Shown: piece after piece, positions 3,001-53,085 of the stretch
Position numbering within the stretch: the first letter of the stretch is position 1
Layout: each line of letters opens with the position of its first letter
From: Bugula neritina
Lineage: Eukaryota; Animalia; Bryozoa
Assembly: GCA_964035545.1 (NCBI GenBank)
Contig: OZ037771.1
Span: forward strand, 62,001-126,000
Length of the DNA: 64,000 bases
Direction of reading: 5' to 3'
Program-made: the position numbers and the translations under genes
Notes under the pieces: model-generated
Told to the model about the DNA's origin: nothing
Seen by the model: the letters and a program-made list of their open reading frames with translations, nothing else
Databases searched by the model: none

Positions 3001-6000
3001 TCAGACTACACACTGTACACTCAGACTACACACTGTATACTCAGACTACACACTGTATACTCAGACTGCGCACTGTATACTCAGACTACGCACTGTATAC
3101 TCAGACTACACACTGTATACTCAGACTACACACTGTATACTCAGACTACATACTGTATACTCAGACTACACACTGTATACTCAGACTACACGCTGTATAC
3201 TCAGACTACACACTGTATACTCAGACTACATACTGTATACTCAGACTACAGACTGTATACTCAGACTACACACTGTATACTCAGACTACACTTACTCGGG
3301 ATGCTCACTAGCCAAGATATCTGCGTCAGTGAGGTTATCAAGACCCCCTGATGTTTCGTTGCTCTTGCTGAACTGAGGGGTAATGATGGGCAGTGAGCCC
3401 TTCATTGTACCAGAGGACTTCCTGTCAGGTTTCAGTCTGCGACAGCCGTAGACGGTGACCAGGACGACTGCCAGGACAAACACCACCGAGCCAACAATGA
3501 TGACCGCCCACATCCACGGCTTTATTGACTGCTTGGAGGTGTTTGTTCCCTCCATTTGGATACAAGCAGCTGCAATACAGTGCAATATAATGCAATATAA
3601 TACAATATAATACAATATAATATAATACAATATAATGCAATATAATACAATATAATACAATACAATATAATACAATACAATATAATATAATGCAATATAA
3701 TACAATACAATACAATATAATACAATATAATACAATATAATATAATACAATGCAATGCAATATAATACAATACAATACAATATAATATAATACAATGCAA
3801 TATAATACAATACAATATAATATAATACAATACAATATAATACAATACAATACAATATAATACAATGCAATATAATATAATACAATATAATACAATACAA
3901 TATAATACAATACAATGCAATATAATACAATGCAATATAATACAATATAATACAATGCAATATAATATAATACAATACAATATAATACAATACAATGCAA
4001 TATAATACAATGCAATATACTACAATATAATACAATACAATATAATACAATACAATATAATACAATACAATACAATACGATACAATACAGGAATTCTCCC
4101 ACAACATTGCAGTATCAACACATACTAGGAGATGAAACACTAATATGTTAGTTGATGTCATAACATACACTTACCGCTCACAGCATCGCAAGCCTTTCCT
4201 TGCCCACAAATATCAACAGTGAGTGGACATCCATCACATCCGGCCACAACCTGGTCAGCATTTGACACGGAAATAGCAAACTTATCTGTAACGGCAGCAG
4301 ACATTGGCAGCCGATCTCCATTGATTATCAGATCAGAGATACAACCTGAAGTAGAGACAGAGATATAACTTGAAGTAGAGACAGAGAGACAACTTGAAGT
4401 AGAGACAGAGATATAACTTGAAGTATAGACAGAGGTATAACTTGAAGTAGAGACAGAGATATAACTTGAAGTAGAGACAGAGATATAACTTGAAGTAGAG
4501 ACAGAGAGATAACTTGAAGTAGAGACAGAGATATAACTTGAAGTAGAGACAGAGATATAACTTGAAGTAGAGACAGAGATATAACTTGAAGTAGAGACAG
4601 AGATATAACTTGAAGTAGAGACAGAGATATAACCTGAAGTAGAGATAGAGATATAACTTGAAGTAGAGATAGAGATATAACTTGAAGTAGAGACAGAGAT
4701 ATAACTTGAAGTAGAGACAGAGAGACAACTTGAAGTAGAGACAGAGATATAACTTGAAGTATAGACAGAGGTATAACTTGAAGTAGAGACAGAGATATAA
4801 CTTGAAGTAGAGACAGAGATATAACTTGAAGTAGAGACAGAGATATAACTTGAAGTAGAGACAGAGATATAACCTGAAGTAGAGACAGAGATATAACTTG
4901 AAGTAGAGACAGAGATATAACTTGAAGTAGAGACAGAGATATAACTTGAAGTAGAGACAGAGAGACAACTTGAAGAAGAGACAGAGAGACAACTTGAAGT
5001 AGAGACAGAGATATAACTTGAAGTAGAGACAGAGAGATAACTTGAAGTAGAGACAGAGAGACAACTTGAAGTATAGACAGAGAGACAACTTGAAGTAGAG
5101 ACAGAGATATAACTTGAAGTAGAGACAGAGATCCAACTTGAAGTAGAGACAGAGAGACAACTTGAAGTAGAGACAGAGAGACAACATAAAGTAGAGACAG
5201 AAGGTGAATACGCGGCAGATAGTACTGAGAAGTCTGAGGTGGACAATGACCTCTCTACATACCTTGATACACGTCAGCAATGATAATCTGGGACACAGTG
5301 TAGAGATCAAGGAAGTCGTGAGGAGCAGAGGAGTTGTCTGCGGCCACTTTACCATCAACTGAGAGCAGAGTGGACGTGTCTGTCACAACCAAAGAGATGT
5401 CATGCCATTTACCATCTGTCACTGTCGTCTCTGCATTTGTCACACTTCCATACACGACTAATCCATCTTGCAACTTCAACTCTCTGTTGGCAGAGTACGG
5501 AATAGTTGACATGACTACCCCGTCCACTCCAGTTCTTACTCGCACACTCAGTCTACTACTATCAGCCGTAATTTGTCTCTTTATTCGTGATGAGGGCGTT
5601 TTCAGCAGTTGATCTCTGCGATAACTCTCCAGGTATTTGTATATGAAGGCAGATGACTGGCTGACGGAGACATCTGTGTCTATCAGAGCTGAAACATACA
5701 TACACTGTATAGATAACTAACGTACCTTCAGTACAAGAGAGCTGGTACTATGCAGAGAACTAACGTACCTTCAGTACAAGAGAGCTGGTACTATACAGAT
5801 AACTAACGTACCTTCAGTACAAGAGAGCTGGTACTATACAGATAACTAACGTACCTTCAGTACAAGAGAGCTGGTACTATACAGATAACTAACGTACCTT
5901 CAGTGCAAGAGAGCTGGGAGTAGAAATTAGGGCAGGCACAGAGAGTAGAGAACCAATCAGCTCGGCATTCATTCTCCTCTCCACACAAGGAGCTGCAGTG

Positions 6001-9000
6001 AGACGCTGGCTGAGGACAAGTGTTCCTTACATTGAAGGTGCTCTGTGAGTCCTCTATTGTGATTGGACGGCCATCTATTTGTAGGTCACCGATACAGCCA
6101 ATGAATGTTGCTGAGGATAACACAGATCTGAATTGAAGGACCGTGTCTATAGCGGCTGTACCTACAGAATAGAGTAAACAGGTATACTATAGAGTACACA
6201 GGTATACTATACTATACACAGGTATACTACAGAGTACACAGGTATACTATAGAGTACACAGGTATACTATAGAGTACACAGGTATACTATAGAGTACACA
6301 GGTATACTATAGAGTACACAGGTATACTATAGAGTACACAGGTATACTATAGAGTACACAGGTATACTATAGAGTACACAGGTATACTATAGAGTACACA
6401 GGTATACTATAGAGTACACAGGTATACTATAGAGTACACAGGTATACTATAGAGTACACGGGTATACTATAGAGTACACAGGTATACTACAGAGTACACA
6501 GGTATACTATACTATACACAGGTATACTATAGAGTACACAGGTATACTACAGAGTACACAGGTATACTATAGAGTACACAAGTATACTATAGAGTACACA
6601 GGTATACTATACTATACACAGGTATACTATAGAGTACACAGGTATACTATAGAGTACACAGGTATACTATAGAGTACACAGGTATACTATACTATACACA
6701 GGTATACTATAGAGTACACAGGTATACTATACTATACACAGGTATACTATAGAGTACACAGGTATACTATAGAGTACACAGGTATACTATAGAGTACACA
6801 GGTATACTATACCTGCAATGTAGAGAGGATGTGAGCTGGTCGTAAGATCTCCGAGCCCCTGGTTGAGTGAGACGCTACTGTAACAGTCCACCTGCTTATT
6901 ACAGGGTGTGGAGCATTCTGAGGCCGACTTGCAGAACACAACCTCTAGAGTAGCTTCAGTAGAGGTCCGTGTAGCGTGTATTCTATACCAGCTTCCGGAG
7001 GCCACAGTCTACAACACACACTGTCACATGACTTGCTAGTCTGAGTAGTTGGTAACCTAGCAACAGTCTACAACACACACTGTCACATGACTTGCTAGTC
7101 TGAGTAGTTGGTAACCTAGCAACAGTCTACAACACACACTGTCACATGACTTGCTAGTCTGAGTAGTTGGTAACCTAGCAACAGTCTACAACACACACTG
7201 TCACGTGACTTGCTAGTCTGAGTGGGTAGTAACCTAGCAACAGTTTACAACACACACTGTCACATGACTTGCCAGTCTGAGTAGTTGGTAACCTAGCAAC
7301 AGTCTACAACACACACTGTCACATGACTTGCTAATCTGAGTGGGTGGTAACCTAGCAACAGTCTACAACACACACTGTCACATGACTTGCCAGTCTGAGT
7401 AGTTGGTAACCTAGCAACAGTCTACAACACACACTGTCACATGACTTGCTAGTCTGAGTAGTTGGTAACCTAGCAACAGTCTACAACACACACTGTCACA
7501 TGACTTGCTAGTCTGAGTAGTTGGTAACCTAGCAACAGTCTACAACACACACTGTCACATGACTTGCTAGTCTGAATTGTGCTCTTCATACACTGGAGAT
7601 GGTTGACTCAATGGGTTTACCTTAGAAACTGTGACCCCGCTTTGACCTTGATCAGCCCTGAAGGTGAAGGTTACGCTGCCATCAGAGATCTGAAGAGCTA
7701 GGAACTGGGAGTCTACTCCTTGCTGGAACAGGAGTAAAGCGTTCATACTCTTAGTTGCCAAGGTCATCTTAATGTCATTCAAATCAAAGCTCTCAGATGG
7801 CAGCTGCATATACGAGCCATCTTGAAATCCGAAGCTGGACTCATTACAGAGCAGCCCGTAGTATCCATATGCACAGTTACACTGGTATCCTCCAGTGGGT
7901 AAATCTGTAACCAATTGGCAGTAATTATATAGTATAACATATATTACAGTATAGCATATATAGCACATAGTATGGGTGTAATATATATTACAGCATAGCA
8001 TATACAGCATATAGTATGAGTGTAATATATATTACAGTATAGCATATACAGCATATAGTATGGGTGTAATATATATTACAGCATAGAATATATAGCATAT
8101 AGTATAGGTGTAATATATATTACAGCATAGAATATATAGCATATAGTATGGGTACGACACACTCACCAACACACGTAGCTGTCTGATGACAAGGATTTCT
8201 GGTCTCACATCTGATTCTCTCCTCACACCTCACACCACGGTAATGCTCTGTACATGCACACTGGAAGGATCCCTCCACGTTGGTACAGCTGCCTCCATTT
8301 AGACATGTGTCCGGGTCCAGACATTCATCAACATCTTCCTCGCACTGAGCTCCCTGCCAGAACTCTGTGCAAACACACTGGAAGTCTGACTCCCCCACTG
8401 GAAGACATCGAGCGCCGTGCATGCAGGGTGAGCTGATGCAGGCTTTAGCCTCGTCACTGCAGCTCTCCCCGATGTACTGCGGCTCACAGACGCAGAGTGG
8501 CTGCAGAGAGGCGAGTTGGTAGGTGAGGGTAAGAGATGCGGTAGACGTGTAGTCTAGCTGGTCAAACACCACCACCTGTGAGCGACAGTCACCATTGCCG
8601 GAGCAGCTGGCCACTGTGCACACATTCCTGCGGGAGGTGGAGACGGTGACACCACTCTTCCTTGATATGGCTTCCTTGTTGGCAGAGAGGAGAGAGGCTA
8701 AGGAGGTGGATGGTGAGCCATCAGCAGCCTCCAGCACAAGGTAGAGGTCAATGTAATTCCCTGTGGATCTCATTGACAGTAATCTAACACTCTCACCGTT
8801 GAAAGTGAACTCTTCAACACTGGAGATGAACAACTCGGAGAGTTTAACAAACTCCTCGGCGCTAACATCAGATACTCGGGTCACAATAGCGGAGTCTAGA
8901 GTGCGATTAGTGTACGGTTTGACTTTGACATTCACAGTTGACTGCACAGTGTTATGAACACCGTCATGTCCATTAACGGTGAGAGACGTGTCTGATTTGA

Positions 9001-12000
9001 GATCTCTAGCTAGAAGTTGACAGCCAGCCCCTGGGTAAGTAAATGGACAATAGTGAGTACACAGTGAGTACACAGTGAGTGTATAGTGAGTGTATAATGA
9101 GTACACAGTGAGTATACAGTGAGTACACAGTGAGTATACAGTGAGTACACAGTGAGTACACAGTGAGTATACAGTGAGTACATAGTGAGTATACAGTGAG
9201 TATACAGTGAGTATACAGTGAGTATACAGTGAGTATATAGTGAGTACACAGTGAGTACACAGTGAGTACACAATGAGTACACAGTGAGTACACACGCACC
9301 AGGAAGAGAGAAGACAGGATGTGAGGAAATGCTACAAGAATAGTCGCCAACCACGTCAACGTCTAGAGGCTCTACGCTAGCCACAGCACCATCAACGTAG
9401 GGGCCATAACTCTGTATGACTACAGTCAGGTCCCTCGGCTCAGACGGCTCATCGTTCTCATCCTCTACGTTCACCTGAACACAAAGTACACGTCATCTAC
9501 CTTTCTGTCTTACAAACACGGCATCATTACCCTCATTCCACCTTCACAACAGTGTACAGAGGGCAGTACACATCACATGTTGGAGATAGACTCACCTTTG
9601 CTGTCAGCTGTGATGTGCGACCACCGCTGTCAGTTACGTCTACTGTAAGAGAGTAAGACTTGGTCACTTCATAGTCAAAGAGCAGGTTCTTAGTGAACAC
9701 TGTGCCTGAGTTCTGGTTGATGTAGAAGTGCGGTGAGTTGAGACTGTAGGTGTACGGCCCCTGTATGTCACATATATATTATCATAATATACTGTCATCT
9801 CATAACTCTGGTTTCATGTAATAAAGACCGAGCTGAATAAAAGTAAAGACCTGATTGGGAGGAATGTCATCATCATATGTCATGGAGCTGAGTCTAAGAA
9901 CTGGAGTGTCGGCCTCAGCTCCTTCGACAACTGAGCCCTCCGGTGTGGGGGGTAAGAAGTAGGGAGACTCATCATTCACATCAGTGACGTGTACATGAAC
10001 TATGGCTTGTCCGGTGAGAGGGGGACGACCCTGATCTATAGCCTGGGCTACCAACATGTACTCATTCTTTTCCTCTCTGTCCAATGAGCCTATATAAATC
10101 AGTTGATATACATCACATACAATACTATACTACATTATATTATACTATATTATATTATACTATATTATATTATATTATACTATGTTATATTATATCATAC
10201 TATACTATATTATATTATATTATATCATACTATAATATTATATTATTATCAGACTCACGAGTGGTGGAGATACGTCCATTGTCAGAGTCTATAGAGAACT
10301 GGCCAAAATCATCCTCCAGAGCATAGCTGAACTTCCTGTTATTAGCCTGCTGGTCAGAGTCAGTGGCAGAGACGGTCAATATATAAACTGCGGGCTGTTG
10401 ATTTTCCCCCACTGAGCCATTATAGGTCAGCTGGTTGAACCGGGGGCTATCATTAGCATCATCTAGATTTATCCATATCGTCGCCGTATCTGTATCATTC
10501 CCTGTCAGAACAGTTAGTAACAATATAATATGTTATACAATACAATATAATATAATATAATATACTACAATATAATATAATATAATATACTACAATATAA
10601 TATAATACATAATATAATATAATGCACTGATATTTATACATAGCCTACCTTTCACAGGTCCGGGATTTTTCACCAGAGCATGCAGTATTACGGTTGCCAC
10701 ACTTTCCCGATCTAATATTTCTGCCACTGTCAGTCTCCCGGTGGTTATGTCGAGAGAGAATCCCTTCTCGTTGCTCTCCCCAGTAAGTATGTACAGGAGC
10801 TGACCGTCTGCCCCTTCATCCTCGTCAGTCGCTGTCAGGTCTCCCAACACATGTCCAACTTGAGCTGATTCACTGACGTCAAATGTGTACGTCTTCTGCA
10901 GAACATATACAGAGCATATAGTAATATACAGAGCATATAGTAATATACAGAGCATATAGTAATATACAGAGCATATAGTAATATACAGAGCATATAGTAA
11001 TATACAGAGCATATAGTAATATACAGAGCATGTAGTAATATACAGAGCATATAGTAATATACAGAGCATATAGTAATATACAGAGCATATAGTAATATAC
11101 AGAGCATGTAGTAATATACAGAGCATATAGTAATATACAGAGCATATACATATAGTAATATACAGAGCATATACATATAGTAATATACAGAGCATATAGT
11201 AATATACAGAGCATATACTAGTACGTATAATACCATTATGTAACAGCTGATAAAACATACCTGTATGAATTTGGGTGAATATTCGTTGACTCCTCTCACA
11301 TAAACAGTAAGCAGAGCTGTACTAGTATATGCACTACTTTTAGGATTCACTGCTTTCACTGAGAGTCTGTATTCACTGCTCTCTTCATAGTCAAACACTG
11401 TTTTAGCAATGATCTCTCCGGACACACTGTCTATACTGAATAGTCTGTGGGACGAGCCATCCTCAATGATTGAGTATCTGAAAAAGTGACAGTAGTGCTA
11501 GTAGTAGTGACAGTAGTGCTAGTAGTAGTGCTAGTAGTAGTGACAGTAGTGCTAGTAGTAGTGACAGTAGTGCTAGTAGTAGTGACAGTAGTGCTAGTAG
11601 TAGTATATGCCTACCTTACAATGCCATTATCACCCTCGTCAGCGTCAACAGCGCTGACCTTGGTAACAAAGGAGTCAGGGTCAGAATTCTCAGAGAGGTA
11701 CGCAGTATAAGAGCTGGAGGTGAAGACTGGAGGATTGTCATCCGTGTCAAGGACATTGAGGGTTAGTACTGTGTATATCTTCTCAGGGTAGAACGCTTTG
11801 TCTTGTGCTCTCAGTGTAACCTGGTGCTGTGTTGATTTCTCGTAATCTATTAGTGAGGGATATATTACACAGACAGTGTATTCTCTCGTAATCTATTAGT
11901 GAAGGATATATTACACAGACAGTGTACTCTCTCGTAATCTATTAGTGAAGGATACATTACACAGACAGTGTACTTTCTCGTAATCTATTAGTGAGGGATA

Positions 12001-15000
12001 TATTACACAGACAGTATATTCTCTTGTAATCTATTAGTGAGGGATATATTACACAGACAGTGTACTCTCTCGTAATCTATTAGTGAGGGATATATTACAC
12101 AGACAGTGTACTCTCTCGTAATCTATTAGTGAGGGATATATTACACAGACAGTATATTCTCTCGTAATCTATTAGTGAGGGATATATTACACAGACAGTG
12201 TACTCTCTCGTAATCTATTAGTGAGGGATATATTACACAGACAGTATATTCTCTCGTAATCTATTAGTGAGGGATATATTACACAGACAGTGTACTCTCT
12301 CGTAATCTATTAGTGAGGGATATATTACACAGACATACCCAGAGCCTTAGAGAGGATGATTTGTCCAGTCTGAGGGTCAATACTCAACAAGTCAGCATCA
12401 TGGCTGCCAGAGACTATGGAGTAGATAATAGCAGAGTTGATGCCTTCATCCGAGTCCCCTGCTCTAACTACAGCTATCTCGTAGCCTGCTTCCTCACTCT
12501 CCGATACATCATATTCCAGGGGCGTTGGTGTCACCCACTATATATACAGTCAGTAGGACAGTATTCATACACTATATAACACCTACACTATACACACACC
12601 TATACATGTATGTATATCATGTAATATAAAGTATTTGAGTCTTACCCGAGGAGAGAACCTGTTCTCTGGAGTTATGAGTACAGTAACAGTCACATGACTC
12701 GACTGAACTGGCTGCCCGTGATCAGCTGCTTGTAGAGTCAGCGTGCGGTACTCGCCTGTTTTACCAACCACAGACTTGCTGACAGACACTTTCCCGGTGC
12801 TGCCTTCTACTTTAAACAGGGAGCTGCCATTCCCCCCGACTATAGAGTAGGAGACTAGGGCGTTGTCATGGTAGTCGACATTGTCAGCAGCGTTTACAGT
12901 CACCACCTCAGTATCCAGCGCAATGTCATCAGGAACAGCTGTCAAAATATAGCAGTGTGCTGTAGGTAGATACAGTGTGCTGTAGGTAGATACAGCGTAC
13001 TGTAGGTAGATACAGTGTGCTGTAGGTAGATACAGTGTGCTGTAGGTAGATACAGCGTACTGTAGGTAGATACAGTGTGCTGTAGGTAGATACAGTGTGC
13101 TGTAGGTAGATACAGTGTGCTGTAGGTAGATACAGTGTGCTGTAGGTAGATACGGTGTGCTGTAGGTAGATACAGTGTACTGTAGGTAGATACAGTGTGC
13201 TGTAGGTAGATACAGTGTACTGTATGTAGATACAGTGTGCTGCAGGTAGATACAGTGTGCTGTAGGTAGATACAGTGTGCTGCAGGTAGATACACTAAGC
13301 TAGGTGCTAGGTGGTAGGTGCTAGGTGGTAGGTGCTAGGTGGTAGGTGCTAGGTGGTAGGTGGTAGGTGCTAGGTGGTGGTACAGGGAAGAAATTAACAC
13401 TCACCAACAAAGTAACTGGTCTGTGAGAACTGCGGGGCGTGATCATTAGCATCCACTATAGAAATGTTTACTAGGGCTACGGCTGTGTGGCTGGGCACCC
13501 CGTGATCCCGTGCCTCAACATGGAGCATGTAAGAATTGTGGATCTCAGTGACATCAAACTCAAGGACATCCTTAGACTTAATTTCCCCCGTCATCGGGTC
13601 TATGAGAAAGAAGGAGCTGGGGCTAACGAGTTGATACTTTACCTGCAAGCAGTGTAACCATACAATACTATACTCATACAGTGTAACCATACAATACTAG
13701 ACTCATACAGTGTAACCATACAATACTAGACTCATACAGTGTAACCATACAATACTAGACTCATACAGTGTAACCATACAATACTATACTCATACAGTGT
13801 AACCATACAATACTAGACTCATACAGTGTAACCATACAATACTAGACTCATACAGTGTAACCATACAATACTATACTCATACAGTGTAACCATACAATAC
13901 TATACTCATACAGTGTAACCATACAATACTATACTCATAACGTAGTGTCAGACTAACCAGGGAGTTGGGTCCCTCCTCGTCCTCATCCTGTGTGTGGAGT
14001 TGTCCCACTACTGAGCCGACTGGCTGCTGCTCAGTGAAAGTAAAACTGTATGTTGGAGACGGGAGGAATTCTGGGGCATTATCGTTAACATCCGTCACCT
14101 GCAGTATATTGCTTTAATATAATACAATATAATACAGTATAACATAGTATAATACAATATAACATAATATAATATAACACAATATAACACAGTATAACAT
14201 AATATAACACAGTATAACACAATATAAAACAAGACAATAGACTACACAGCACCTGTATCTGTATGGTTGTAGAACCAGATATTCCATTCTCTCCTTGCAC
14301 ATTCTTAGCACTGACCACCACCTCATAGCTACTCACATTCTCTCTATCTAGTTTGGCTGTCAGAGTGACGTTACCGCTAGGAGTAATAGCGAAGTGGGAA
14401 CTTGGGCTATGCATTGAGTATAAAATCTCAGCATTTATTCCCACGTCTGCGTCTGTGGCGCTGACAGAGGAGATGATGCTGCCTACCAGCATATCCTCAG
14501 CAACACTCCATCTGTAGGCAGAGTCAAACCTGGGGAACATGTCGTTGATATCCTCCACGTTGACAATGACTATGGTGGTGGATGTGAGCCCTCCCCCGTC
14601 ACTAGCCTGTATAAGTAAGGAGTACCTGGCTATTCTCTCTCTGTCCAAGCTCTTAGTTCTCACCAGAGAGCCGTCTGGCTCCAGAATGAAAGGGTCGTCC
14701 ACGTTGCCAGACAGCAGGCTGTAGGTGACGGTGCCGTTCACACCAGAGTCCCTGTCTGTGGCTGTCACCTTGAGAAGGAGTCCTGCGTCAAACACATTCT
14801 CCTCCTCCACAACAGACACCACGTACAGAGCTTGCTCAAACTCCGGAGTGTGATTGTTCTCATCTGCTACCATGATTACCAGCTTCTCATACGACTTCGC
14901 CTCAGTGCTCACATCTCTCGCCTCTATCCAGAGGTCAAATGTCGGGGTGAGCGAGTAATCTAGAGGTCTAGTAAGAAGGAGTTGCCCGTCCACCCCTACC

Positions 15001-42000: not shown

Positions 42001-45000
42001 AGTAGTAATAGTAGAACTGAGTAGAGAGTAGTAGTAGTAGAACTGAGTAGGGAGTAGTAGAACTGAGTTGGGAGTAGTAATAGTAGAACTGAGTAGTAAT
42101 AGTAGAACTGAGTAAGGAGTAGTAATAGTAGAACTGAGTAGGGAGTAGTAATAGTAGAACTAAGTAAGGAGTAGTAATAGTAGAACTGAGAAGAGAGTAG
42201 TAATAGTAGAACTGAGAAGAGAGTAGTAATAGTAGAACTGAGTAGTAATAGTAGAACTGAGTAAGGAGTAGTAATAGTAGAACTGAGTAAGGAGTAGTAA
42301 TAGTAGAACTGAGTATGGAGTAGTAGTAGTAGAACTGAGTAGGGAGTAGTAGAACTGAGTTGGGAGTAGTAATAGTAGAACTGAGTAGTAATAGTAGAAC
42401 TGAGTAGTAATAGTAGAACTGAGTAAGGAGTAGTAATAGTAGAACTGAGTAGGGAGTAGTAATAGTAGAACTGAGTAAGGAGTAGTAATAGTAGAACTGA
42501 GTAGGGAGAGGGAAAGGGTTGTTTTCCTCAAGTAAACCCGGGTTAATTTCTCTGCCATAGAGCATAGACCGTGAAGCTCAATTTTATACCCATGACAAAT
42601 CATCAAAACACAAATTCAATAACATGTAAGCAAGAATAAATCTGACAAAGAAAATAAATTGTTAATTTTCTATACCTTTTCAATCTAGAACTTTTTTTAA
42701 ACAATAGCACAAACAAAAGCATTAATTTTTGTGACTTTATCTGATGAAGAATGAACAAAAGAGCTGGCATACAGGGTACTGCACCTATGAACAGAACCTA
42801 TGCCAGCAGGCTTGAACTGACATGAATGTGACTATGTTTTGCGTAGTCTGTGAGAATACTATTAATCCCAGCTCAATTACCAACTATCTTGACCCTTGAA
42901 CAATTTATCTGTTCCCAGTCTTTTAGATTTACTATATTTTGTTCTAATTAGACACTCGAGCAGTAAAACACCTCAATTCAAACAGCAGAAAGTGGCTGGA
43001 ATGGCTAGAAATAATTACTTTTTGATCACTTTAGTGCCAGGCAGATAGATTTAGTTAGATGGCAGTAGTATATAATCTCAGTGCAGTTTTCTATGGCTTA
43101 TTCATCACCACTTTTGATCTATACTGACTGTGCCGTATACTATACTGTATACTGACTACTGACTACGGTTAGTAGCAGCACACTCACAATGAAATAATCA
43201 ATTAAAAGGGAGGCCAATATTTACATTTAAACTGCAAAGTATACATGATGAGTAAATATGAGCAAACAAATAAGAAACAAAACCACTGAAAAATATTCAA
43301 GGGGAAAAGCTATGGCTATGGTCTATAGCTAACCATCACAGCGCATGCGTTTTCTCAGTCACACTGATTACTTAAAATCTATAAACTGCAAATGTTGCAA
43401 AATTTCTTGATTCACAAAGTCATCTAAATGACACTTTCAACTTTGAAATCACAGTTACCCATACCCATAATTTACAATGATCCTGAAAACACTAATTGGG
43501 TAGTTAACATTTAACTAATAACATATTATACAATAAATCATAATATGGGTTATTTAGATAGACTTTAGTTGAATACAACCAACCTTCATCAGCGTCAGTA
43601 GCAGTGACTGCAGCGACAAAGCTGTTCACAGGCTCCAACTCACTAACCACAGCGAAATATGCTGCTGATGAAAAGACTGGACTGTGGTCATTGGCGTCCA
43701 AAACAATCACAGTTATACTGATTGTAGAACTTAAACTATTGACACCATAATCACTAGCAACAAATGTCAAGTTATAAGAAGATATTTGTTCCTTGTCCAT
43801 CAACTCTTTAGTAAATAAAAAACAGAATTTTGATATGCATATAGGAGGTTTGAAATGTCCAAGCTCGTTTCCAGATAGAATAGCGAGACTGACACGACCG
43901 TTCTCTCCTTTATCTTCATCCCTAACAACAAAACTAACAGCACGAGAATCGATTGGTGCATCTTCAGAAACAGTTGGTGGTTGTTTACCAGAGACGATAA
44001 CTACGGGAGCATGGTCATTAACATCTTCCACAATTATTTTCACCCGACTTTGGTCTCGGAGTTGGGTAGATCCAAGGCCGTCCTGATCTACCACCCATAT
44101 CTCTAGGACACACACTGTGAGACACAGAGTAGTATTACAGTAACTTGATTGGCAAGATGTTTCAGATGAGTAATCTGAATTATGTAGAGCCGCCTTTAGC
44201 AATACTTCTCCTGTAAAGCTGTCTATGCTAAACAGCTTGTTCTGTGTCATGGAGTAGACAAGAGCAGAGTTGAGGCCTTCATCAGGATCATCGGCTTGCG
44301 TTTCAAGTACCTTGGAGCCTACCGTAGCGTTTTCAAGGACCACCCCATGATATAAACTTAAGTCAAATGTTGGATGATTGTCGTTCAGGTCTCTAACAAC
44401 AATATTAACAACTGCTGTACCAGTTTTAGCAGAAACAGCACCGTCTCTAGCTTCAACAACAAGACGGAAAGACGGAATTTCCTCTCGGTCAACTTGTTTC
44501 AGCAGCGTCAACGCACCCGTTTTCTGACCAGAGCTGGTACTGGTAGTTAACTTCCAATAACCTTTTTCATTGCCAGATATTATGGAGTAAGTCAATGATC
44601 CATTAACACTGAAATCAGCATCATTGGCTGTCAATGTGAAAGGTTGAATAGGTACATCATTCTCAGTAATAGTATAATTTAAAGTGTTGGATGTAAATCT
44701 TGGGCTATTGTCATTTATATCAATGATGAGCACTATCACTTCAATGAAGATGGAAGGAGATGACGGATGATTCTGCTTCACCACAAATTTAATCTCATTG
44801 CTGATCAATCGCTCTCTGTCGATAATCTTTTTAACACTGATTTCTCCTGATAACTGGTTTACAGAGAAATATTGAGTCTGAGTGGCAAGATCATACGTGT
44901 ATCCAGAGCTATTGCTAATCCCACCAATCAAACTGCCAGCAGGCAAGTTTTCTTCTATACTAAAATGCCTTTTAAGGCCTTCCTGGCAAACTGCAGGTGA

Positions 45001-45156
45001 GATTAATGATTGAAATACGACAAAGGCTATTAGAAGCTGGAGGCGTTGATTAGGTGACCTGCATGCTTTCCAACCAAGTGGCAAACTGCTCAAACGTGTA
45101 AAATATTTTGTTTTTCCATATAGATGTTGTGCCAGACAACTGTTCCATGGACGCAT
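1..45156 (-). CDS. FAT4: Protocadherin Fat 4-like / Fat giant cadherin, 52 coding exons in window, 3' end outside window
   Basis: Exons (5'->3', minus): 43584-45156, 40983-41141, 40635-40788, 40054-40249, 37891-38163, 37485-37655, 34016-34312, 33730-33905, 33240-33388, 32536-32826, 31992-32155, 31424-31564, 30613-30997, 29607-29851, 27201-27377, 26688-26894, 25264-25464, 24736-25011, 23482-23671, 22253-22596, 21634-21838, 20645-20823, 19730-19939, 19315-19546, 18083-18222, 17767-17919, 17325-17526, 16918-17154, 16309-16421, 15713-15911, 14253-15283, 13958-14098, 13405-13642, 12646-12938, 12339-12537, 11615-11846, 11261-11477, 10649-10895, 10259-10501, 9851-10089, 9596-9760, 9300-9474, 8167-9030, 7621-7904, 6813-7008, 5898-6161, 5263-5688, 4175-4345, 3296-3569, 2538-2767, 524-788, 1-57. 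All introns are GT-AG, phases are consistent, total ~14,090 nt. Repeated DxNDNxPxF, LDRE/LDYE and AxDxDxGxN cadherin motifs; EGF repeats (exon 8167-9030); two LamG-like regions; TM WMWAVIIVGSVVFVLAVVLVTV; cytoplasmic YDFDESASIAPSDVDIRKYYKGYR resembles the conserved Fat/FAT4 SSIAPSD motif. Confidence 0.93.
108..510. repeat. Degenerate (TAG/CTA)n microsatellite, intronic
   Basis: gtagtagtacta-type run filling intron 58-523. Confidence 0.9.
820..2533. repeat. 42-bp minisatellite, ~41 copies
   Basis: unit agcatattatatattacattatatacacattactataacagt. Confidence 0.95.
2790..3291. repeat. 20-bp minisatellite, ~25 copies
   Basis: unit cactgtatactcagactaca. Confidence 0.95.
3572..4089. repeat. 5-bp microsatellite
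   Basis: mixed tacaa/tataa/tgcaa. Confidence 0.9.
4334..5200. repeat. 24-bp minisatellite spanning splice acceptor, ~36 copies
   Basis: unit cagagatataacttgaagtagaga matches the junction at 4345/4346. Confidence 0.95.
5708..5917. repeat. 43-bp minisatellite spanning splice donor, 5 copies
   Basis: sense unit ccagctctcttgtactgaag|gtacgttagttatctgtatagta. Confidence 0.95.
6168..6810. repeat. 20-bp minisatellite, ~32 copies
   Basis: unit ggtatactatagagtacaca fills nearly the whole intron. Confidence 0.95.
7004..7574. repeat. 59-bp minisatellite spanning splice acceptor, ~10 copies
   Basis: sense gtgtgttgtag|actgt recurs every 59 bp. Confidence 0.95.
7938..8153. repeat. 44-bp minisatellite, ~5 copies
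   Basis: tattacagcatagcatatatagcatatagtatgggtgtaatata-like unit. Confidence 0.85.
9052..9293. repeat. 12-bp minisatellite, ~20 copies
   Basis: unit acagtgagta(c/t)a. Confidence 0.9.
10906..11217. repeat. 19-bp minisatellite, ~16 copies
   Basis: unit atacagagcatatagtaat. Confidence 0.9.
11486..11604. repeat. 21-bp minisatellite
   Basis: unit agtgacagtagtgctagtagt. Confidence 0.85.
11838..12335. repeat. 46-bp minisatellite spanning branch point and acceptor, 11 copies
   Basis: sense ccctcactaatag|attacgaga recurs every 46 bp from 11847 to 12307. Confidence 0.95.
12953..13380. repeat. 20-bp minisatellite (~17 copies) plus taggtgg/taggtgc run
   Basis: unit tacagtgtgctgtaggtaga, then a 7/14-bp repeat at 13299-13380. 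Confidence 0.9.
13650..13939. repeat. 29-bp minisatellite, 10 copies
   Basis: unit cagtgtaaccatacaatacta(g/t)actcata. Confidence 0.95.
15296..15700. repeat. 11-bp minisatellite
   Basis: unit agtagagta(tt/at/tc). Confidence 0.9.
15965..16237. repeat. 29-bp minisatellite, ~9 copies
   Basis: unit acactcactcagtatatagttacacagtt. Confidence 0.95.
16426..16900. repeat. 19-bp minisatellite, ~25 copies
   Basis: unit agatatcatatagtagtgt fills intron 16422-16917. Confidence 0.95.
17538..17740. repeat. ~30-bp degenerate minisatellite, ~6 copies
   Basis: tacacatgatatactatataatagttacta-like unit. Confidence 0.75.
17934..18100. repeat. 32-bp minisatellite spanning splice donor, 5 copies
   Basis: sense tatactctaaccatacaa|gtaagtgtgaccta versus exon end tatactttgactatacaa|gtaagt. 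Confidence 0.9.
18721..19312. repeat. 11-12-bp repeat (agtagtagttag)
   Basis: direct inspection; contains an embedded copy of the donor junction. Confidence 0.9.
20365..20620. repeat. 28-bp minisatellite with G5 tract, 9 copies
   Basis: unit tgtatactcaaggagtgtacaccggggg. Confidence 0.95.
20852..21628. repeat. 32-bp minisatellite, ~24 copies
   Basis: unit agtagactatgagtcatgactatgtagtagta. Confidence 0.95.
21887..22256. repeat. 31-bp minisatellite spanning splice donor, ~12 copies
   Basis: sense unit gtgagtgtgggcgtgtctccttattgcagag. Confidence 0.95.
22620..23452. repeat. 23-bp minisatellite, ~36 copies
   Basis: unit agtatagagatagagtagtatat. Confidence 0.95.
23876..24690. repeat. 38-bp minisatellite, ~21 copies
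   Basis: unit actatgactagtacttctactataatactattacta(c/t)a. Confidence 0.95.
25505..25638. repeat. 16-bp quasi-palindromic minisatellite, ~8 copies
   Basis: unit actgactcactgagta. Confidence 0.9.
26056..26241. repeat. Degenerate acaggt(g/a)ag repeat
   Basis: gacaggtgagtgacaggtag variants. Confidence 0.8.
26461..26665. repeat. 14-bp repeat
   Basis: unit gagactgagtgagt. Confidence 0.85.
27396..29331. repeat. 14-bp minisatellite, ~138 copies
   Basis: unit tatagagagtgta(a/g). Confidence 0.97.
30022..30610. repeat. 28-30-bp minisatellite, ~20 copies, abutting donor
   Basis: unit tatatattctctctctagttatatcata(a/t)g. Confidence 0.9.
31041..31410. repeat. 24-bp minisatellite, ~15 copies
   Basis: unit acacaatgtagaatacactgtata. 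Confidence 0.95.
31552..31724. repeat. 28-bp minisatellite spanning splice acceptor, 6 perfect copies
   Basis: sense cttatatgtttatag|gcagttgacaatg. Confidence 0.95.
32174..32520. repeat. 43-bp minisatellite, 8 copies
   Basis: unit ctgtccacactaacaccccttagttcacacactgtatacacta. Confidence 0.95.
32836..33222. repeat. ~20-bp degenerate minisatellite
   Basis: ccccctctataccatacac variants. Confidence 0.85.
33440..33698. repeat. 20-bp perfect minisatellite, 13 copies
   Basis: unit atacacatactatacaatat. Confidence 0.95.
34325..34772. repeat. ~44-bp minisatellite, ~10 copies
   Basis: agagctagtatagtatagtaagtacagtatatagtaagtacaac. Confidence 0.85.
35240..35455. repeat. 53-bp minisatellite, 4 copies
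   Basis: gaacaacataggggaggagagtagagggcagtatagctagtatataattatat. Confidence 0.9.
35781..37435. repeat. 26-bp minisatellite, ~63 copies
   Basis: unit agtagtatagtgtaatataaaggta(c/t), with 23-bp deletion variants. Confidence 0.97.
37677..37914. repeat. 30-bp in-frame minisatellite spanning splice donor, 8 donor copies
   Basis: sense tcaccgagttcttatgtgctagag|gtaata, reads VISPSSYVLE. Confidence 0.95.
38191..39476. repeat. 25-bp minisatellite, ~51 copies
   Basis: unit aatatatgagagtagttagttatat. Confidence 0.97.
39715..40010. repeat. Degenerate ~16-bp repeat
   Basis: tatacacagtatatag variants. Confidence 0.8.
40266..40479. repeat. 28-bp minisatellite, ~7 copies
   Basis: unit tacatgttatacacaatacagtatatat. 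Confidence 0.9.
40816..40978. repeat. Degenerate ctacaccc/ctgcta repeat
   Basis: fills intron 40789-40982. Confidence 0.75.
41902..42507. repeat. ~19-25-bp minisatellite with higher-order block
   Basis: unit gagtagtaatagtagaactgagtaag variants. Confidence 0.9.
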
Positions 45157-48100
45157 GATCTACAAGCCCACTGAGTGATTTACTATTTCTCAGTCACTAA
45201 TCCATCAGATCATCAGCCAAACTCCTCTTCAAGTCCAGATTCCACAACTAACTATACAACACAATAAGAGCATATCCAGTGAGCACAACTAACTATACAA
45301 CACAATAAGAGCATATCCAGTGAGCACAAATTACATAGAGTGTAAATAGCACTTTAACTCAATACTGTCCAGAATACCTAATTTTATTCACTTATAAAAT
45401 AGTTTTTCCACTTTTTAATTCAGAAATAAAGTGCACATGCAAATAAATCATTCCAACAATATGAGCATAGCCTTTCACTGATCAATCTGTTGACCGCAAG
45501 TTGAAGAATTTCATTACAATAAGTTACAAGTTACATGCAAACTAGAAAATATTTTAACGAAAGATCAAACGACACAATGAGCATATTACTTTCTGTTATT
45601 TAAAATTAAGAATATCCGAATGACAGATCACAGAAAGTTTACTATAATAATTCACAAGCCCAAGTAGAGTTAGTATTCAAATCACAATTTTTATTTACAA
45701 TTCGATTCATTATTGTTTGTAGATGTATCAAATTAATTATTCAATATCTTCACAGCAACTTCTTTCGAGTTAGATTAGAGCAGGAAAATTAAAAGTGAAT
45801 CTAAGCAGCTTTTTCACAATTACAATATTATCATAAACTCAGTATTCAATATTAACATCAAAACAATGAAAGATACAGGTCTGACTTCACTGGTTTTCAT
45901 TAGCCATACTATACTATTACTATTAGTATATCAAAACAATTTGCTATAATTATTTGACATAAACATATAAAACTAAGCATAATATTAATAATATCACTAT
46001 GCAAAAAGAAATTAAATAAAAGTATATATTAGCGACATCAGATATCAACCAAGAGCTACTATGACTGTCACTACCAAGTACCACTATGAGTAAAACTATG
46101 ACTATGAGTAAAACTATGAGTCTATGAGTAGCCTATAACCATGATTACAACTACAAGAAATTAGTGATTAGACTTGAAGTTGATACTATGTAGTATTATT
46201 ACTAATAATATTAATTATTAAAACTATCATAATAAAAAATAAATAACCATTAGTTAACTACTAGCTCTACTCTTATCTATAACTATAAGTATACGTACAA
46301 GAGTAAAACTAAGTATAAACTTAAAAACTATAGGTATAGCAATAACTATAACTATAAAGTATAAGTATTAGTATTTGTTTTTAGTTTGACTCTTTTACTT
46401 CTAGTATAACTATAAGTATTCAATTTGAAGTTCAACTTCAAGTTGAACTGTTGAAGTTCAACAGACTGAGACAATCTGAATCACAGGTGACAATATGAAT
46501 ATAAATATTAATAGTAATACTAACATTATTGTTAATAGTAATAGAATAAACATAACCATAATAGTATTAATATTATTACTATTACTATTAGTATTACCAT
46601 TGGTAATACTAATATTATTATTATTAGTATTATTATCAGCATTACTAATACTAATACTAATAATAATACTCAATGAACTAAAAATTATAGTTCACAGGTT
46701 ATAGTTCAATGCTGATAATAATACTAATAGTAATACACTAATAGTAATAGTAATACTAATAGGCAGACAGTGTAATATTTATCTTCATCTTGTGTTCATG
46801 TTGAATGGTATGATAATGATCTAAAAGACTTACTAGTACTTAGTTAGAGTTACTAGTAGTAGTTATACTTACTAGGCTGCTTTTTCTTTTGCAAGAGGAA
46901 AGTTACTTTCCACAATTCTAGTCAAGCAGGTTATGATAATAGGGCAAAAGCAGAAAAAAAATAAAAAGATATTGCGAAATGCGAATTACGCAGACGAAGT
47001 CAACATCGATTGAATAACATGTTGTATCCTATGTACACAATGAAACTAACAGGTAGCAGCGAACACCTGCAGTAGTCAGTTATTGGTTAGTGCAAAATTT
47101 AAGACTCCGCCTATTGTTTGGGCAAGTTGTAGTGGAAGAGAAAATAACTCCAGTCTTGACTTGAATTGCTCATTACATGATAAAATGTTGCAGGTGCATC
47201 CATCATTTGGACTTGAAAAAATTAATTAATACAATATTTTCAGCACTAATTATGATCAATAATACTATTGGATAGCCTGTTTGTTCTTGCATTTAAGTTT
47301 ATCAATGTTTATGTAATGATTTCTCCATTTAAATCTTTGCTACTGTTAGTACTGTACTTGCATTGCGAGACTGAGAGTGAGTGAGTGTCACACTCACAGT
47401 CACGGTCAGTCTGTTAGAGTAGTTAGAGTATGACATTGAATATGAGTGTGAGACTGAGTCTCAGTAATGCCGCTATTAGTAGACATAGTATTAGCAGTAC
47501 CAGTAGTAGTGCTTCCAGTTCTTTAATGTTGAAAAATATAATTAACTATAAGTATAACTATAAGACTAAGTATAACATTAACTATAACTATAAGTAAATA
47601 AATCTCTTGGTAAGACCAACTCTAACTCTAAGAGATTTACTTTTACTTTTATTAACCATATGAGTAATAATATGATTGTCATTATGAGTCAAATCCTAAT
47701 CTATGAGATTGAATATAAGTTGAGTAAATATAAGTAAATAACTAACTTACAGTTAATGTTTCATTTTTTAGTTACTATTAGTATTAGTATTACTATTAGT
47801 ATAACAATTAGTATTCCTCAACTCCAACTGAAAGAATAACTTATTATTTATGTGAATTATCAGTATCACAATTAGTATTACATTTACTCAAAGTAATAAC
47901 ACTGAAGATCAATATGAATATGGTAATAAGTGTAAGAATAAATTGTAATTGATTTTATTCACGTGATTAAGAATCTGACTATCACTATGACTATGAGTAT
48001 CAGTATAATAAAATTTATTAGTAATTAAAATTATTACTAGTACTACTAGACACCAATTTAGTGACTAATAGTAATTAGTAACCAGGGGAAAGTATGTAAT

Positions 48101-48723
48101 ATTGTAATATTTGATATAAATATAATATATCATTCATATGAATGAAAGCTATAAGTCAAAAACTTAGATTAAATTTAAATAGTTGGGATTATACCTTATG
48201 CTAATGTGCTTGCAATATCCATACTGATTATTTTACAGTCAATAATTGGTATAAAATTTAAATATATTGATTTGAATATTTAATATAATTCATGCTGTGA
48301 ACATCAGTGGCTTCAATATTTTAATACTAATTGGCAGCAGTATTATTTGTGGTTAAAAATATCTTGAGCTGAATTTTATAAGTTTATGCTGATGTTTGTT
48401 GTTCACTATAAGTTATTTGATTTATTGACCAAGTCTAATAGCAGGACGTGTTAGCATGTTGTTCATAAGTAGCAACTAAAATATCACTTCACAAAAAGTT
48501 TTATAAAACAATGTATTGATATTAAATTAGTCACTTGGTCATCACATTGATTTGCAAGTTACCTAATAGACAAGAGTTAACAGGTCATACAAATGTCAGT
48601 GGATGAAATTTCTATTTCATTGCTGATAATAAATTTAAACAGGCAGTTATTGTTTGATACAGGGCAAAATTTTCTTTATGCAAGCCAAGTCATTTTTGCT
48701 CTAATTTATGTAGATTTTGGAAA

Positions 48724-51231
48724 ATGGCTGGCTTTATCCGTAATATTTGTCCTAAGCTACTACATTCTCGACATTTCTCCAAGTTGCTTCCCAAACAGCA
48801 TGTGTTTGAGTTCACTAATTCTTGCGTCCACCAGCCCATAATCTTTTCATCAAGACTACTCAACACAACTACTCAAGCACCTGCTAAAAAGAAAAACAAA
48901 AAACCTGTTGGCAGTAAATCAAAAGACCAAAAACTACAGAATGAGGTTAGTAAGTTTATATGTAGCGCTTGCTTTTAGTTAGAGCTTGTACTATCATAGT
49001 TCATACATTTATATTTCATACCTTGGCATTTCGTTATTCTTAATCTTGTCATTTCAACAAGGATAGACCTTCTAGTTTGGATGAAATTGTCAACATGGAG
49101 GAGGTAGACAGATTGTTTGCTGAAGTCTTGGCTGACTTTCACAATGAGCTGGTCAGTAGAACAAGTATTAGGGCCAGTCAAGCATCACTTAGCCAACTTT
49201 CTATTGATATTGACAGTGGCAAAACCATAGATCTACAATATATAGGTAACTATACTGATTAGTATATCAATATATAGGTAACTATACTGATTAGTATATC
49301 AATATATAGGTAACTATACTGATTAGTATATCAATATATAGGTAACTATACTGATTAGTATATCAATATATAGGTAACTATACTGATTAGTATATCAATA
49401 TATAGGTAACTATACTGATTAGTATATTAATATACAGGTAACTATACTGACTAGTATATCAATATATAGGTAACTATACTGATTAGTATATCAATATATA
49501 GGTAACTATACTGATTAGTATATCAATATATAGGTAACTGTACTGATTAGTATATCAATATATAGGTAACTATACTGATTAGTATATCAATATATAGGTA
49601 ACTATACTGATTAGTATATCAATATATAGGTAACTATACTGATTAGTATATCAATATATAGGTAACTATACTGATTAGTATATCAATATACAGGTAACTA
49701 TACTGATTAGTATATCAATATATAGGTAACTATACTGATTAGTATATCAATATATAGGTAACTATACTGACTATTATATCAATATACAGGTAACTATACT
49801 GATTAGTATATCAATATACAGGTAACTATACTGATTAGTATATCAATATATAGGTAACTATACTGATTAGTATATCAATATATAGGTAACTATACTGATT
49901 AGTATATCAATATATAGGTAACTATACTGATTAGTATATCAATATATAGGTAACTATACTGATTAGTATATCAATATATAGGTAACTATACTGACTATTA
50001 TATCAATATACAGGTAACTATACTGATTAGTATATCAATATATAGGTAACTATACTGATTAGTATATCAATATACAGGTAACTATACTGATTAGTATATC
50101 AATATACAGGTAACTATACTGATTAGTATATCAATATACAGGTAACTATACTGATTAGTATATCAATATATAGGTAACTATACTGATTAGTATATCAATA
50201 TATAGGTAACTATACTGATTAGTATATCAATATATAGGTAACTATACTGATTAGTATATCAATATATAGGTAACTATACTGATTAGTATATCAATATATA
50301 GGTAACTATACTGACTAGTATATCAATATATAGGTAACTATACTGACTCCTCTTGTGGGTTCTCATTCATCCATTTTGTTGAAAAATTTGCTTACTTTTA
50401 GCCCAAGTTTCAGTAAAGCCTCCAAACTTGGTTCACATAAACTTAGCCTCCCACCCGCAGTATATTGCAAGTGTAAGAAAAAGGCTACAGAGAGCTGACC
50501 TCAGCCTGAATCCTCGAGTTGATGGAACTTCACTCTTCATAGAAATACCTAAAGTGACGAGGGATCACAGAGAGAAGCTGAGTAAAGCAGCCAAAGTGAG
50601 TATATACTAGGTGCTATACTATACTGTACTAGGTGCTATACTACACTACACTACGTGCTATACTATACTGTACTACGTGCTATACTACGTGCTATACAAC
50701 ACTATACTACACTACGTGCTATACTATACTACACTACGTGCTATACTACACTATACTATGTGCTATACTATACTACACTACGTGCTATACTATACTATAC
50801 TATATGCTATACCAGGTGCTATACTACACTATACTGTGTGCTATACTACAATATACCATGTGCTATACTACAATATACCATGTGCTATATTACGTGCTAT
50901 ACTATGTGCTATAATTTCCTAGAAACATTTCAGATAATTTCTGACCAGCATAAAGTCAAGGTACGACAGGTACAAAACTCTAATGTCAAAGTTATCAACA
51001 AATGGAAGGATTACTTCAGCATTGATGATTTGCGGAGACTGGAAAATAAAGTTTTAGAGGTGATGAATTTTCAATATTTTATAACTCAACAGTTTTGACT
51101 TTGTTGGCTTTTAGTGGTAACAACTAACCTGTTATATGCTATCTTTATTTCTACAGTTGGGAAAACTTCAAAATCGAAAGATAGATGAAATGTTGAAGTC
51201 CCGGCAGAAAGAGCTTTTGAATGACCAATAG
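48724..51231 (+). CDS. MRRF: Mitochondrial ribosome recycling factor (~266 aa, 5 coding exons)
   Basis: Exons 48724-48945, 49062-49245, 50402-50595, 50934-51059, 51157-51231; GT-AG, in phase. Basic N-terminal transit-like peptide followed by AKKK; RRF motif LNPRVDGTSLFIEIPKVTRDHREKLSKAAK; C-terminal KIDEMLKSRQKELL. Confidence 0.9.
49236..50347. repeat. 32-bp minisatellite spanning MRRF exon 2 donor, 35 copies
   Basis: unit caatatatag|gtaactatactgattagtatat. Confidence 0.97.
50603..50912. repeat. Degenerate gtgctatactacactatactac repeat
   Basis: fills MRRF intron 3. Confidence 0.8.
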
Positions 51232-51785: not shown

Positions 51786-53085
51786 AACTTACTACTGATG
51801 AAGTGTTATTTCTTTCTCCTCAAACCAACTAGTTACAATAAATACAACCTGATATACAGTGTTTATTCTTATGATATAATACACTATGATATAATATACA
51901 ACAATATAATAGGTACAGTAGACTATAATGTAATACACTACACTATATTACAATACAGTACACTATAGTATAATGCAGTGCACTCTAGTGTAATACACTA
52001 TAGTATAATAGGTACAGTACACTATAATACAACACAGTATACTATAGTATAATGCAGAATATTTAGTAATATAATGCAGCGCACGATAATAATATATTGC
52101 CGTACACTGTATTGGAGGCACACGATGTGATTATGCCTGGAGTTGTTTGTTCCTGACGGAGTGTTGTTACGCTGTATGTAGAGAGAGCACAACTTTAAAT
52201 TAAATCAATTGTTCTGCAACAATTAATATGGAGTATGGTGTAGGTGTGGCCTGTGTGGTAATGATAGGGTGGGTATAGAATATAATTGTGTGTGTTCAGT
52301 GGAGAGAGTGTAGAAAAGAGACTGCAGCAGTGTGAATGGAGGAGAGACTGAAACATCAACTAGGATTCTGTAATACTGAGTGCTCAACCTAGAGGTCTGA
52401 CCAAGATAGGATCTGAAGCTAACGTCTAAGCATAACATATTAATACCCAAACCTCCAGCTGGCTGTACAGTGAGTTGATAAACAAGTTGGACTAACAAAT
52501 ACAGTTAAAACATAAATACTAAATTTTTTTCTAAACCTGGATAGGCCGATGATATGATCACCATTATCATTATGATTCTTAAATAACTATAATCATATAG
52601 AATGCTAACTACTATTTATGATTTATACATAATAATACTAATACAGTAATAGTGGTACTGCACTCAGCTGTGCTATCTTTAAGAGAGTTTCTAGCTATAT
52701 AATTAGATATAAAGGTGGTGTTGGCAACTGGGTAAATGAAATATGTGAGTTGATAGTAGGCAGCAAAAGTGTTGGGAGTTTATTCCAATTTTTGTTGCAG
52801 TTTACAAAAGCAAAGTATACAATTCTAGGTTTCAATTTTGATCAATGCTCCAGATCACTTCTATTGCTATTCCTAACACCAATTATCTACTATTTATGCC
52901 TGAAAGCAACCAAATAGCTAAATTCATGTGTGCTGTTATTAAATGCCTTTTTTAAAGTTTAAAGCATTTTTGAAGACTTTCAATCTAAATAATTAAAACC
53001 AGTTAATGCTACCCTCTGCACAAAACAGCATAAAACAAGTGTAAAACAAAACATATTTGTATTACTAGATATTCTTATGCAAGCA

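Follow-up and report, generated by a model that had tools for sequence, protein, structure and literature searches.

The tandem repeat arrays that run across exon-intron junctions near the scaffold end of Bugula neritina contig OZ037771.1 raise the question whether duplication is directed to splice junctions, and which of the many repeated splice sites is used. We addressed it with two genes within a stretch of 64,000 nucleotides (hereafter the window). One encodes a FAT4-like protein with the layout cadherin repeats, EGF, laminin G, likely transmembrane segment and cytoplasmic tail, for which exon-by-exon searches gave Pfam matches to Cadherin, Cadherin_FAT4_N, EGF and Laminin_G, and bilaterian FAT4 proteins were the best colinear homologues. 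Its gene model is GT-AG and free of stops, and 42-45 of the 50 introns were recovered exactly by an independent protein-guided aligner. The other gene is MRRF, of which exon 3 matched Pfam RRF (E=6.5e-12). For both genes the homology searches were run per exon, never on the joined model, and a search for a full-length near-identical transcript protein found none.

Among the 108 junctions of the 54 introns in these genes, nine are crossed by an array (Table 1), each overlapping a junction of the stop-free GT-AG model, and the coordinates and periods given for them in the original prediction were all reproduced. Its claim of a systematic pattern beyond one gene is borne out by two further cadherin genes, which add five cases, and in all 14 arrays the unit consists of exon, splice signal and intron. 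The splice dinucleotide is kept at 101 of 142 decoy positions, thus in many copies but not all. Of the 4 to 35 near-identical decoys predicted per array, those of introns 47, 20 and 25 are partly dead, AG being kept in intron 47 in only 2 of 35 inner copies (CAG to CAA). Selection against decoy dinucleotides was considered and is not established, since a single array contributes 33 of the 41 dead decoys and the losses are mainly G-to-A changes, also expected from AT-biased mutation. The expectation that only the exon-adjacent copy gives a clean frame fails at introns 5 and 47: all seven intron 5 decoys and the two intact intron 47 decoys are in frame without stops, so that frame alone cannot single out the outermost copy. 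Each of the five decoys of intron 11 gives a frameshift or stop.

Table 1. Junction-straddling arrays, background arrays and host genes in the window. Exact, exon overlap identical to the neighbouring copy.
Feature	Coordinates	Strand	Location or description	Junction	Exon overlap (nt)	Exact (nt)	Intact decoys
30-bp x8 donor array	37676..37914	-	FAT4-like intron 5	37891	24	24	7, all
28-bp x6.2 acceptor array	31552..31724	-	FAT4-like intron 11	31564	13	13	5, identical
31-bp x12 donor array	21887..22260	-	FAT4-like intron 20	22253	8	4	7/11
32-bp x5 donor array	17934..18101	-	FAT4-like intron 25	18083	~19, loose	6	3/4
46-bp x10.8 acceptor array	11838..12335	-	FAT4-like intron 35	11846	9	9	10
59-bp x9.7 acceptor array	7004..7575	-	FAT4-like intron 44	7008	5	5	8/9
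43-bp x5 donor array	5704..5917	-	FAT4-like intron 46	5898	20	7	4
24-bp x36 acceptor array	4334..5201	-	FAT4-like intron 47	4345	12, loose	3	2/35
32-bp x34.7 donor array	49236..50346	+	MRRF intron 2	49245	10	10	34
Non-straddling intronic arrays, about 48	812..50913		Locus-private; background class				
FAT4-like protocadherin	520..45156	-	51 exons, ~4,680 aa; contains 8/9 junction arrays				
MRRF (mitochondrial ribosome recycling factor)	48724..51231	+	5 exons, 266 aa; stop-free model				

Private minisatellites were found in 49 of the 54 introns, and about 40 introns of the two genes besides the nine of Table 1 carry arrays off the junctions, a class absent from the original prediction. Approximately three quarters of the intron DNA in the window is array (32,296 intron bases, 7,870 of them unique). 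Array-free introns have a median of 116 nt in the window, the smallest array-free intron has 85 nt, and 35 of 89 array introns would, if collapsed, be shorter than this smallest one. Repeats take up 52% and 31% of the DNA 0.06-0.13 Mb from the scaffold end. Farther in, their share is 18% at 1.6 Mb and 16% at 2.6 Mb, then about 3% at 5.5-6.4 Mb, a gradient of five loci with distances taken from scaffold ends, since a search that passes over simple repeats found no telomere motif. The steep climb of array density toward the scaffold end resembles that of human VNTRs, which are enriched 21-fold in the outermost 5 Mb of chromosome arms (PMC7608644), but the human subtelomeric VNTRs are GC-rich while the arrays here are AT-rich, AA-poor and TA-rich, and the likeness refers to scaffold ends at five loci only. 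An origin of the arrays from a common mobile or satellite family was rejected: among 63 units compared, only a segmental-duplicate pair was identical, and the other best unit-to-unit matches, low-complexity 20-mers, reached only 80-85%.

Orthologous arrays are present in a relative (L030; independent JGI assembly, about 5% diverged) with other copy numbers and unit lengths. The 46-bp array of intron 35 is common to L030 and the window, with lineage-specific variants, and neighbouring arrays hold 25 versus about 6 and 8 versus 16 copies, respectively, the short-read copy numbers being approximate and the comparison spanning lineages, not alleles. That the arrays are an artefact of assembly or long reads, as the very high repeat density and the near-perfect repetition of some arrays could suggest, is practically inconceivable, because short-read contigs of run X17 (possibly the source sample) show 0 differences to the intron 5 array over 61-242 nt, and because L030 has the same arrays with variants of its own in another lineage; this rejection applies to the presence of the arrays, the copy numbers being those assembled. 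In more distant relatives the intron positions are the same and the arrays are mostly missing. The position of intron 5 is kept in a distant relative without the array, the acceptor position of intron 44 in a relative without the array, and the acceptor position of intron 11 and the donor position of intron 46 each in a relative; in one distant relative the orthologous introns are longer. The intron positions are older than the arrays. The Rogers model of intron gain (discussed in PMC3087553) likewise has a duplicated sequence that includes AG/GT signals, but here no new intron has arisen, and intron gain by tandem duplication is ruled out by the conserved positions of introns 5, 11, 44 and 46 in distant relatives. 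No array crossing both junctions of one intron was found.

The placement of arrays was analysed for 107 arrays and 155 introns in three regions, nearly all the introns being from three cadherin genes and the junctions of both genes outside the window being predicted. Fourteen arrays straddle a junction and about 87% do not. The expected number of straddlers is 27.2 if introns are collapsed (P(<=14)=1e-4), 26.5 if entire arrays are slid along, 22.6 if introns are given a minimum of 85 nt, 20.3 if their lengths are sampled from array-free introns (P<=0.06) and 13.9 if the minimum is 200 nt. A weak excess appears with a 400-nt floor (8.3 expected, P=0.03). All these values hinge on the intron length when each array arose, a caution to which the longer orthologous introns of one distant relative add. 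The units of straddling arrays are longer than those of the others (medians of about 32 and 20 nt, P=2e-4), in agreement with the geometric expectation, and the exon overlap of straddlers is skewed to short (KS P=0.012). Junctions are not targeted, and straddling is no commoner than expected if local duplications fall at random in short introns. The proposal that a mutational process seeds duplications at junctions is therefore not sustained: straddling is at or below chance under every realistic null, and junction overlap no higher than chance is the very outcome that the original prediction had named as speaking against itself. A junction-targeted process (e.g., splicing-linked R-loops or breaks with local duplication), whose products selection would prune to about chance, could be argued from the recurrence across genes, from the weak excess if introns were at least 400 nt at array birth, and from the many array edges within 15 nt of a junction, but we regard it as quite unlikely, since six other nulls give no excess, near-junction edges are mostly intronic (30 on the intron side versus 14 on the exon side), the offset from the junction is not fixed, array density follows the distance from the scaffold end, and the great majority of arrays do not straddle.

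Turning to splice-site use, RNA contigs of three runs join only 37655-37891, the outermost donor of intron 5, as predicted for splicing in general; this is one donor junction, read from RNA of a lineage 6-7% diverged and from contigs that lose rare isoforms. For the remaining eight arrays we infer the use of the exon-adjacent copy from frame or homology only. Run X1 gave low-depth pieces over two intron 5 units (depth 55-88 vs 1594), which may be DNA or pre-mRNA, and none spanning two such units was found in runs X2 and X4. Frequent use of inner copies, either as tolerated isoforms (a ladder of 10-aa insertions at intron 5) or as NMD substrates tuning expression by copy number, would accord with the seven in-frame, stop-free decoys of intron 5, with the X1 pieces and with the nearest pseudo-sites used in human CBS and 6-16, but appears unlikely in view of the sole joint in the three runs and the X1 pieces' possible DNA or pre-mRNA origin and absence from X2 and X4. 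Highly improbable, in our estimate, is the predicted recursive use, in which AG-preceded repeated donors would serve as ratchet sites and some arrays would be removed stepwise to leave normal mRNA. AG precedes GT in the copies of MRRF intron 2 and FAT4-like intron 46, and splicing to such an AG|GT copy would restore the junction without trace in mRNA; among real acceptors these copies rank at the 25th and 21st percentile, a weak score. However, only four of nine donor arrays have AG|GT, versus 87 of 155 ordinary donors with exon-final AG, none of the five acceptor arrays regenerates a donor, and at 30-43 nt the units are much shorter than any array-free intron. A strong acceptor directly before the donor (YAG|GT) was not found, only two of nine donor arrays scoring even weakly, so that recursion falls for all acceptor arrays and is left, weakly, for these two.

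Most probably the arrays are ordinary locus-private intronic minisatellites of a repeat-rich distal region, straddling junctions by geometry, with the outer copy used and some selection. A short tandem duplication (about 20-60 bp) would start anywhere within a short intron or at its edge, and slippage or unequal exchange would then amplify and homogenise it, copy-number turnover being the part observed. With short introns and units of 20-60 nt, a fair share of seeds cross a junction by geometry alone, and straddling arrays would persist because the spliceosome keeps to the copy joined to the full exon. Inner copies, with 3-24 nt of exon, would lose either by exon definition or because donors are scanned 5' to 3', as human F7 suggests, and selection may purge some straddling seeds, chiefly exon-rich ones, as the straddler deficit and the short-overlap skew indicate.

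The original prediction knew of no description of the pattern, but it has been reported as 'mirages' in amphioxus (PMC3087553, PMC3902484) and from several genes in humans (PMC1557585), and the window arrays are of the amphioxus mirage or human F7/CBS/LMNB2 junction VNTR type. Amphioxus mirage minisatellites occur in Adh3, the globins BflGb6 and BflGb9, troponin C and PGBD5 (PMC3087553, PMC3902484), and somatic length instability is reported for Adh3. Mirages resemble the present arrays in AG/GT kept in many copies, not all, in haplotype length variation, in a terminal unit that is not homogenised and in normal mRNA (PMC3087553, PMC3902484), and the copy-number variation and concerted evolution by which mirages are recognised were found between L030 and the window. 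The present arrays differ in belonging to another phylum, in comprising nine cases in two adjacent genes with arrays in 90% of introns, and in that their frequency was quantified, at or under chance; gene-wide quantification of junction-spanning arrays was not found in the literature searched. The human junction VNTRs are in F7 IVS7 (37 bp), CBS IVS13 (31 bp), IFI6/6-16, LMNB2 (100 bp) and PDGF intron 4 (81 bp) (PMC1557585). There too the first monomer lies across the exon-intron border and the donor is reiterated, the LMNB2 repeat fills most of an intron (that of intron 35 here fills all but 3 nt), and in F7 the most upstream donor is chosen though pseudo-sites would be in frame (PMC1557585). 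Each human case is a donor array standing alone, while here acceptor arrays with intact decoys are also found (introns 11, 35 and 44), at which scanning for the first AG would lead to a wrong site.

As a mutational mechanism the arrays have little weight, being expected from dense minisatellite birth in short introns, whereas for splicing they offer a ready-made competition between identical sites, and the acceptor arrays in which 5-10 intact decoys lie upstream are the more informative, as correct splicing there is not what first-AG scanning would give. It is unlikely, taken as a whole, that the unique intron DNA of distal genes has been mostly replaced by private minisatellites and that the spliceosome passes over as many as 10 upstream acceptors and 34 donors, all identical, with recursive steps in some donor arrays (MRRF intron 2); if true, these compact short-exon genes would let exon definition and the choice of the 3' splice site be studied in a natural experiment on the scale of a genome. 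Junction arrays are also possible raw material of intron gain, and they mislead gene predictors, the protein-guided aligner having put false micro-exons inside them.

All nine arrays of the original prediction, intronic minisatellites whose tandem unit crosses the exon-intron junction of the host gene (straddlers), were identified at their predicted positions, eight in introns 5, 11, 20, 25, 35, 44, 46 and 47 of the FAT4-like gene and one in intron 2 of MRRF. These nine straddlers, among 57 arrays and 108 junctions, cross the junction by 5-24 nt, with an exact match to the adjoining copy over 3-24 nt; arrays are present in 49 of the 54 introns of the two genes, in which unique DNA makes up 7,870 of 32,296 bases. 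Two further arrays, which begin 0 or 3 nt ahead of a donor, were not counted because the exon part is too short. The FAT4-like model comprises 51 exons, free of internal stops and separated by GT-AG introns, and its best colinear homologues are bilaterian FAT4/fat proteins. Homology searches were run exon by exon, and the joined models were translated for frame check only. Using a purpose-written protein-guided spliced aligner, trained on half of the introns, 42-45 of the 50 FAT4 introns were recovered exactly with each of three distant proteins as guide; the boundaries of introns 9 and 17 were set after the aligner result, both being confirmed at the locus of a relative.

Table. Coordinates of features in and around the two genes (window positions unless prefixed)
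Feature	Position	Detail
Window on its scaffold	C7:62001-126000	15.8-Mb scaffold; 216-Mb animal genome
FAT4-like gene	45156 to ~520	minus strand
MRRF	48724-51231	plus strand; 5 exons, 266 aa
Intron-47 acceptor array	4334-5201	
Intron-35 acceptor array	11838-12335	compare L030:1-309
Intron-5 donor array	37676-37914	
Intron-5 RNA joint	37655 to 37891	outermost donor
Introns collapsing below 85 nt (examples)	37656-37890, 17920-18082, 6162-6812, 11847-12338	
Uncounted donor arrays	6169-6812, 37421-37487	
Two-copy duplication	45243-45329	41 bp, perfect
Intron 41, missing in a distant relative	L031:1987-1988	
Tandem segmental duplicate	54718-57260, 60319-63363	
GT11 fucosyltransferase ORFs	56352-57167, 62453-63268	271 aa each; 95% identical
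Dispersed 131-bp repeat	52180-52310, 58545-58675	95% identical

A mutational process that seeds duplications at splice junctions had been proposed, and this predicts more straddlers than chance. The sample was extended to four other cadherin regions (200 kb); two genes there, with 43 and 58 introns placed by the consensus of three guides (junctions predicted), gave five straddlers among 50 arrays, making 14 of 107 together with the window. The null model placed seed duplications, as long as the observed repeat units, uniformly over all intron-overlapping positions and took an exon overlap of at least 4 nt as straddling. The expected number was 27.2 if every array in an intron was reduced to a single unit (P(<=14)=1e-4), 26.5 if arrays were slid in full, and 20.3 when birth lengths were sampled from the genome's own array-free introns (median 116 nt in the window, 193 nt overall). 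With an intron-length floor it was 22.6 (85 nt), 19.0 (120 nt), 13.9 (200 nt), 10.4 (300 nt) and 8.3 (400 nt; P(>=14)=0.03), and therefore straddling is not enriched unless introns at array birth were about 400 nt or longer; the orthologous introns are about 150-320 nt in one relative and longer in another. Straddling frequency is thus at or below chance; a mild deficit is probable, but we limit the claim because later loss of unique DNA would inflate it. The longer repeat units of straddlers than of other arrays (P=2e-4) are what the geometry of random placement predicts, and the skew of exon overlap toward short values (P=0.012) fits selection against decoys (the inner splice-site copies) having much exon context. 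We read the straddlers as accounted for by chance plus selection, and targeted seeding is not supported.

The decoys had been described as near-identical splice sites, and GT or AG is indeed kept at 101 of 142 decoy positions, but in the intron-47 array only 2 of 35 decoys remain intact. Decoys elsewhere shift the frame or add a stop, but all seven decoy donors of the intron-5 array, like the two intact decoys of the intron-47 array, are in frame and stop-free, and frame alone therefore does not choose the site in these arrays. For intron 5, the one case with an uninformative frame and every decoy intact, three RNA-like runs gave contigs that join the exons at the outermost donor and whose loose ends bear out the adjacent joints; the source lineage of these runs is about 6-7% diverged, and rare forms are lost in such contigs. 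Low-depth pieces on the same array in run X1 may be DNA or pre-mRNA. The predicted choice of the outermost site is thus observed for this donor; for acceptor arrays, reading frame and homology point to the outer site. The alternative of recursive use of the copies is impossible for acceptor arrays and weakly possible for two donor arrays only, in intron 2 of MRRF and intron 46 of FAT4. In the duplicated-site experiments of Reed and Maniatis (1986), a site with a truncated adjacent exon reportedly loses to the outer site. By analogy with the human F7 VNTR, the outer donor would likely be chosen by exon definition or by oriented 5'-to-3' donor selection; in F7, in-frame pseudo-sites are likewise silent and oriented donor selection was shown (PMC1557585).

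The intron-5 array was found with 0 differences, in stretches up to 242 nt, in contigs of the sequencing run X17, which perhaps derives from the source sample. In an independently assembled JGI contig of a related lineage (L030; exon identity 91-97%), the arrays of introns 35-39, 42 and 43 have orthologues, with unequal copy numbers (25 against about 6; 8 against 16) and, for one array, a changed unit length (35 against 44 bp). Its intron-35 acceptor scores 5.3 against 2.1-3.4 for the decoys, from which it has diverged, whereas in the window this acceptor is identical to the decoys and no stronger, which looks as though homogenisation has spread to the site in use. Introns 5, 11, 44 and 46 occupy an identical or neighbouring codon position in relatives of 40-65% protein identity, where they carry no straddling arrays; the introns are therefore older than the arrays, and intron gain is ruled out for these four. 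FAT4 intron 41 is missing in one distant relative.

The original prediction knew of no description of such arrays as a systematic, gene-wide pattern. Border-spanning tandem repeats of amphioxus, termed "mirages", are known from Adh3, globins, troponin C and PGBD5, where they occur at donor and acceptor borders alike and with no aberrant mRNA (PMC3087553, PMC3902484); others are known from human F7, CBS, 6-16, LMNB2 and PDGF (PMC1557585). The window arrays work alike, every testable defining feature being found, and are an unusually dense new instance of these repeats; what they still offer is a natural setting in which to study how splice sites are chosen, acceptors foremost.

Tandem repeats cover 52% of the FAT4 gene and 31% of the remaining window, which lies 62-126 kb from the scaffold end, and 18% at 1.6 Mb, 16% at 2.6 Mb and 2.6-3.1% at 5.5-6.4 Mb from an end; these five loci are only suggestive of array density rising toward scaffold ends, a gradient that parallels the VNTR enrichment of human subtelomeres (PMC7608644). 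Units are private to each locus and compositionally biased, being poor in AA (obs/exp 0.37) and rich in TA (1.7) relative to array-free introns, with more purine/pyrimidine alternation (0.65 against 0.51), hinting at a sequence preference in which seeds expand. Among array-holding introns, 35 of 89 collapse below 85 nt, the smallest array-free intron, some to 26-40 nt; arrays seem to have displaced unique DNA and now to provide obligatory intron length. The perfect two-copy repeat of 41 bp that precedes the FAT4 start codon may be a young seed array. The two segmental duplicates, each with a fucosyltransferase ORF, share a 20-bp array of 23 and 77 copies, which serves as a gauge of array turnover against substitution. 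A dispersed 131-bp repeat is also present in two copies.
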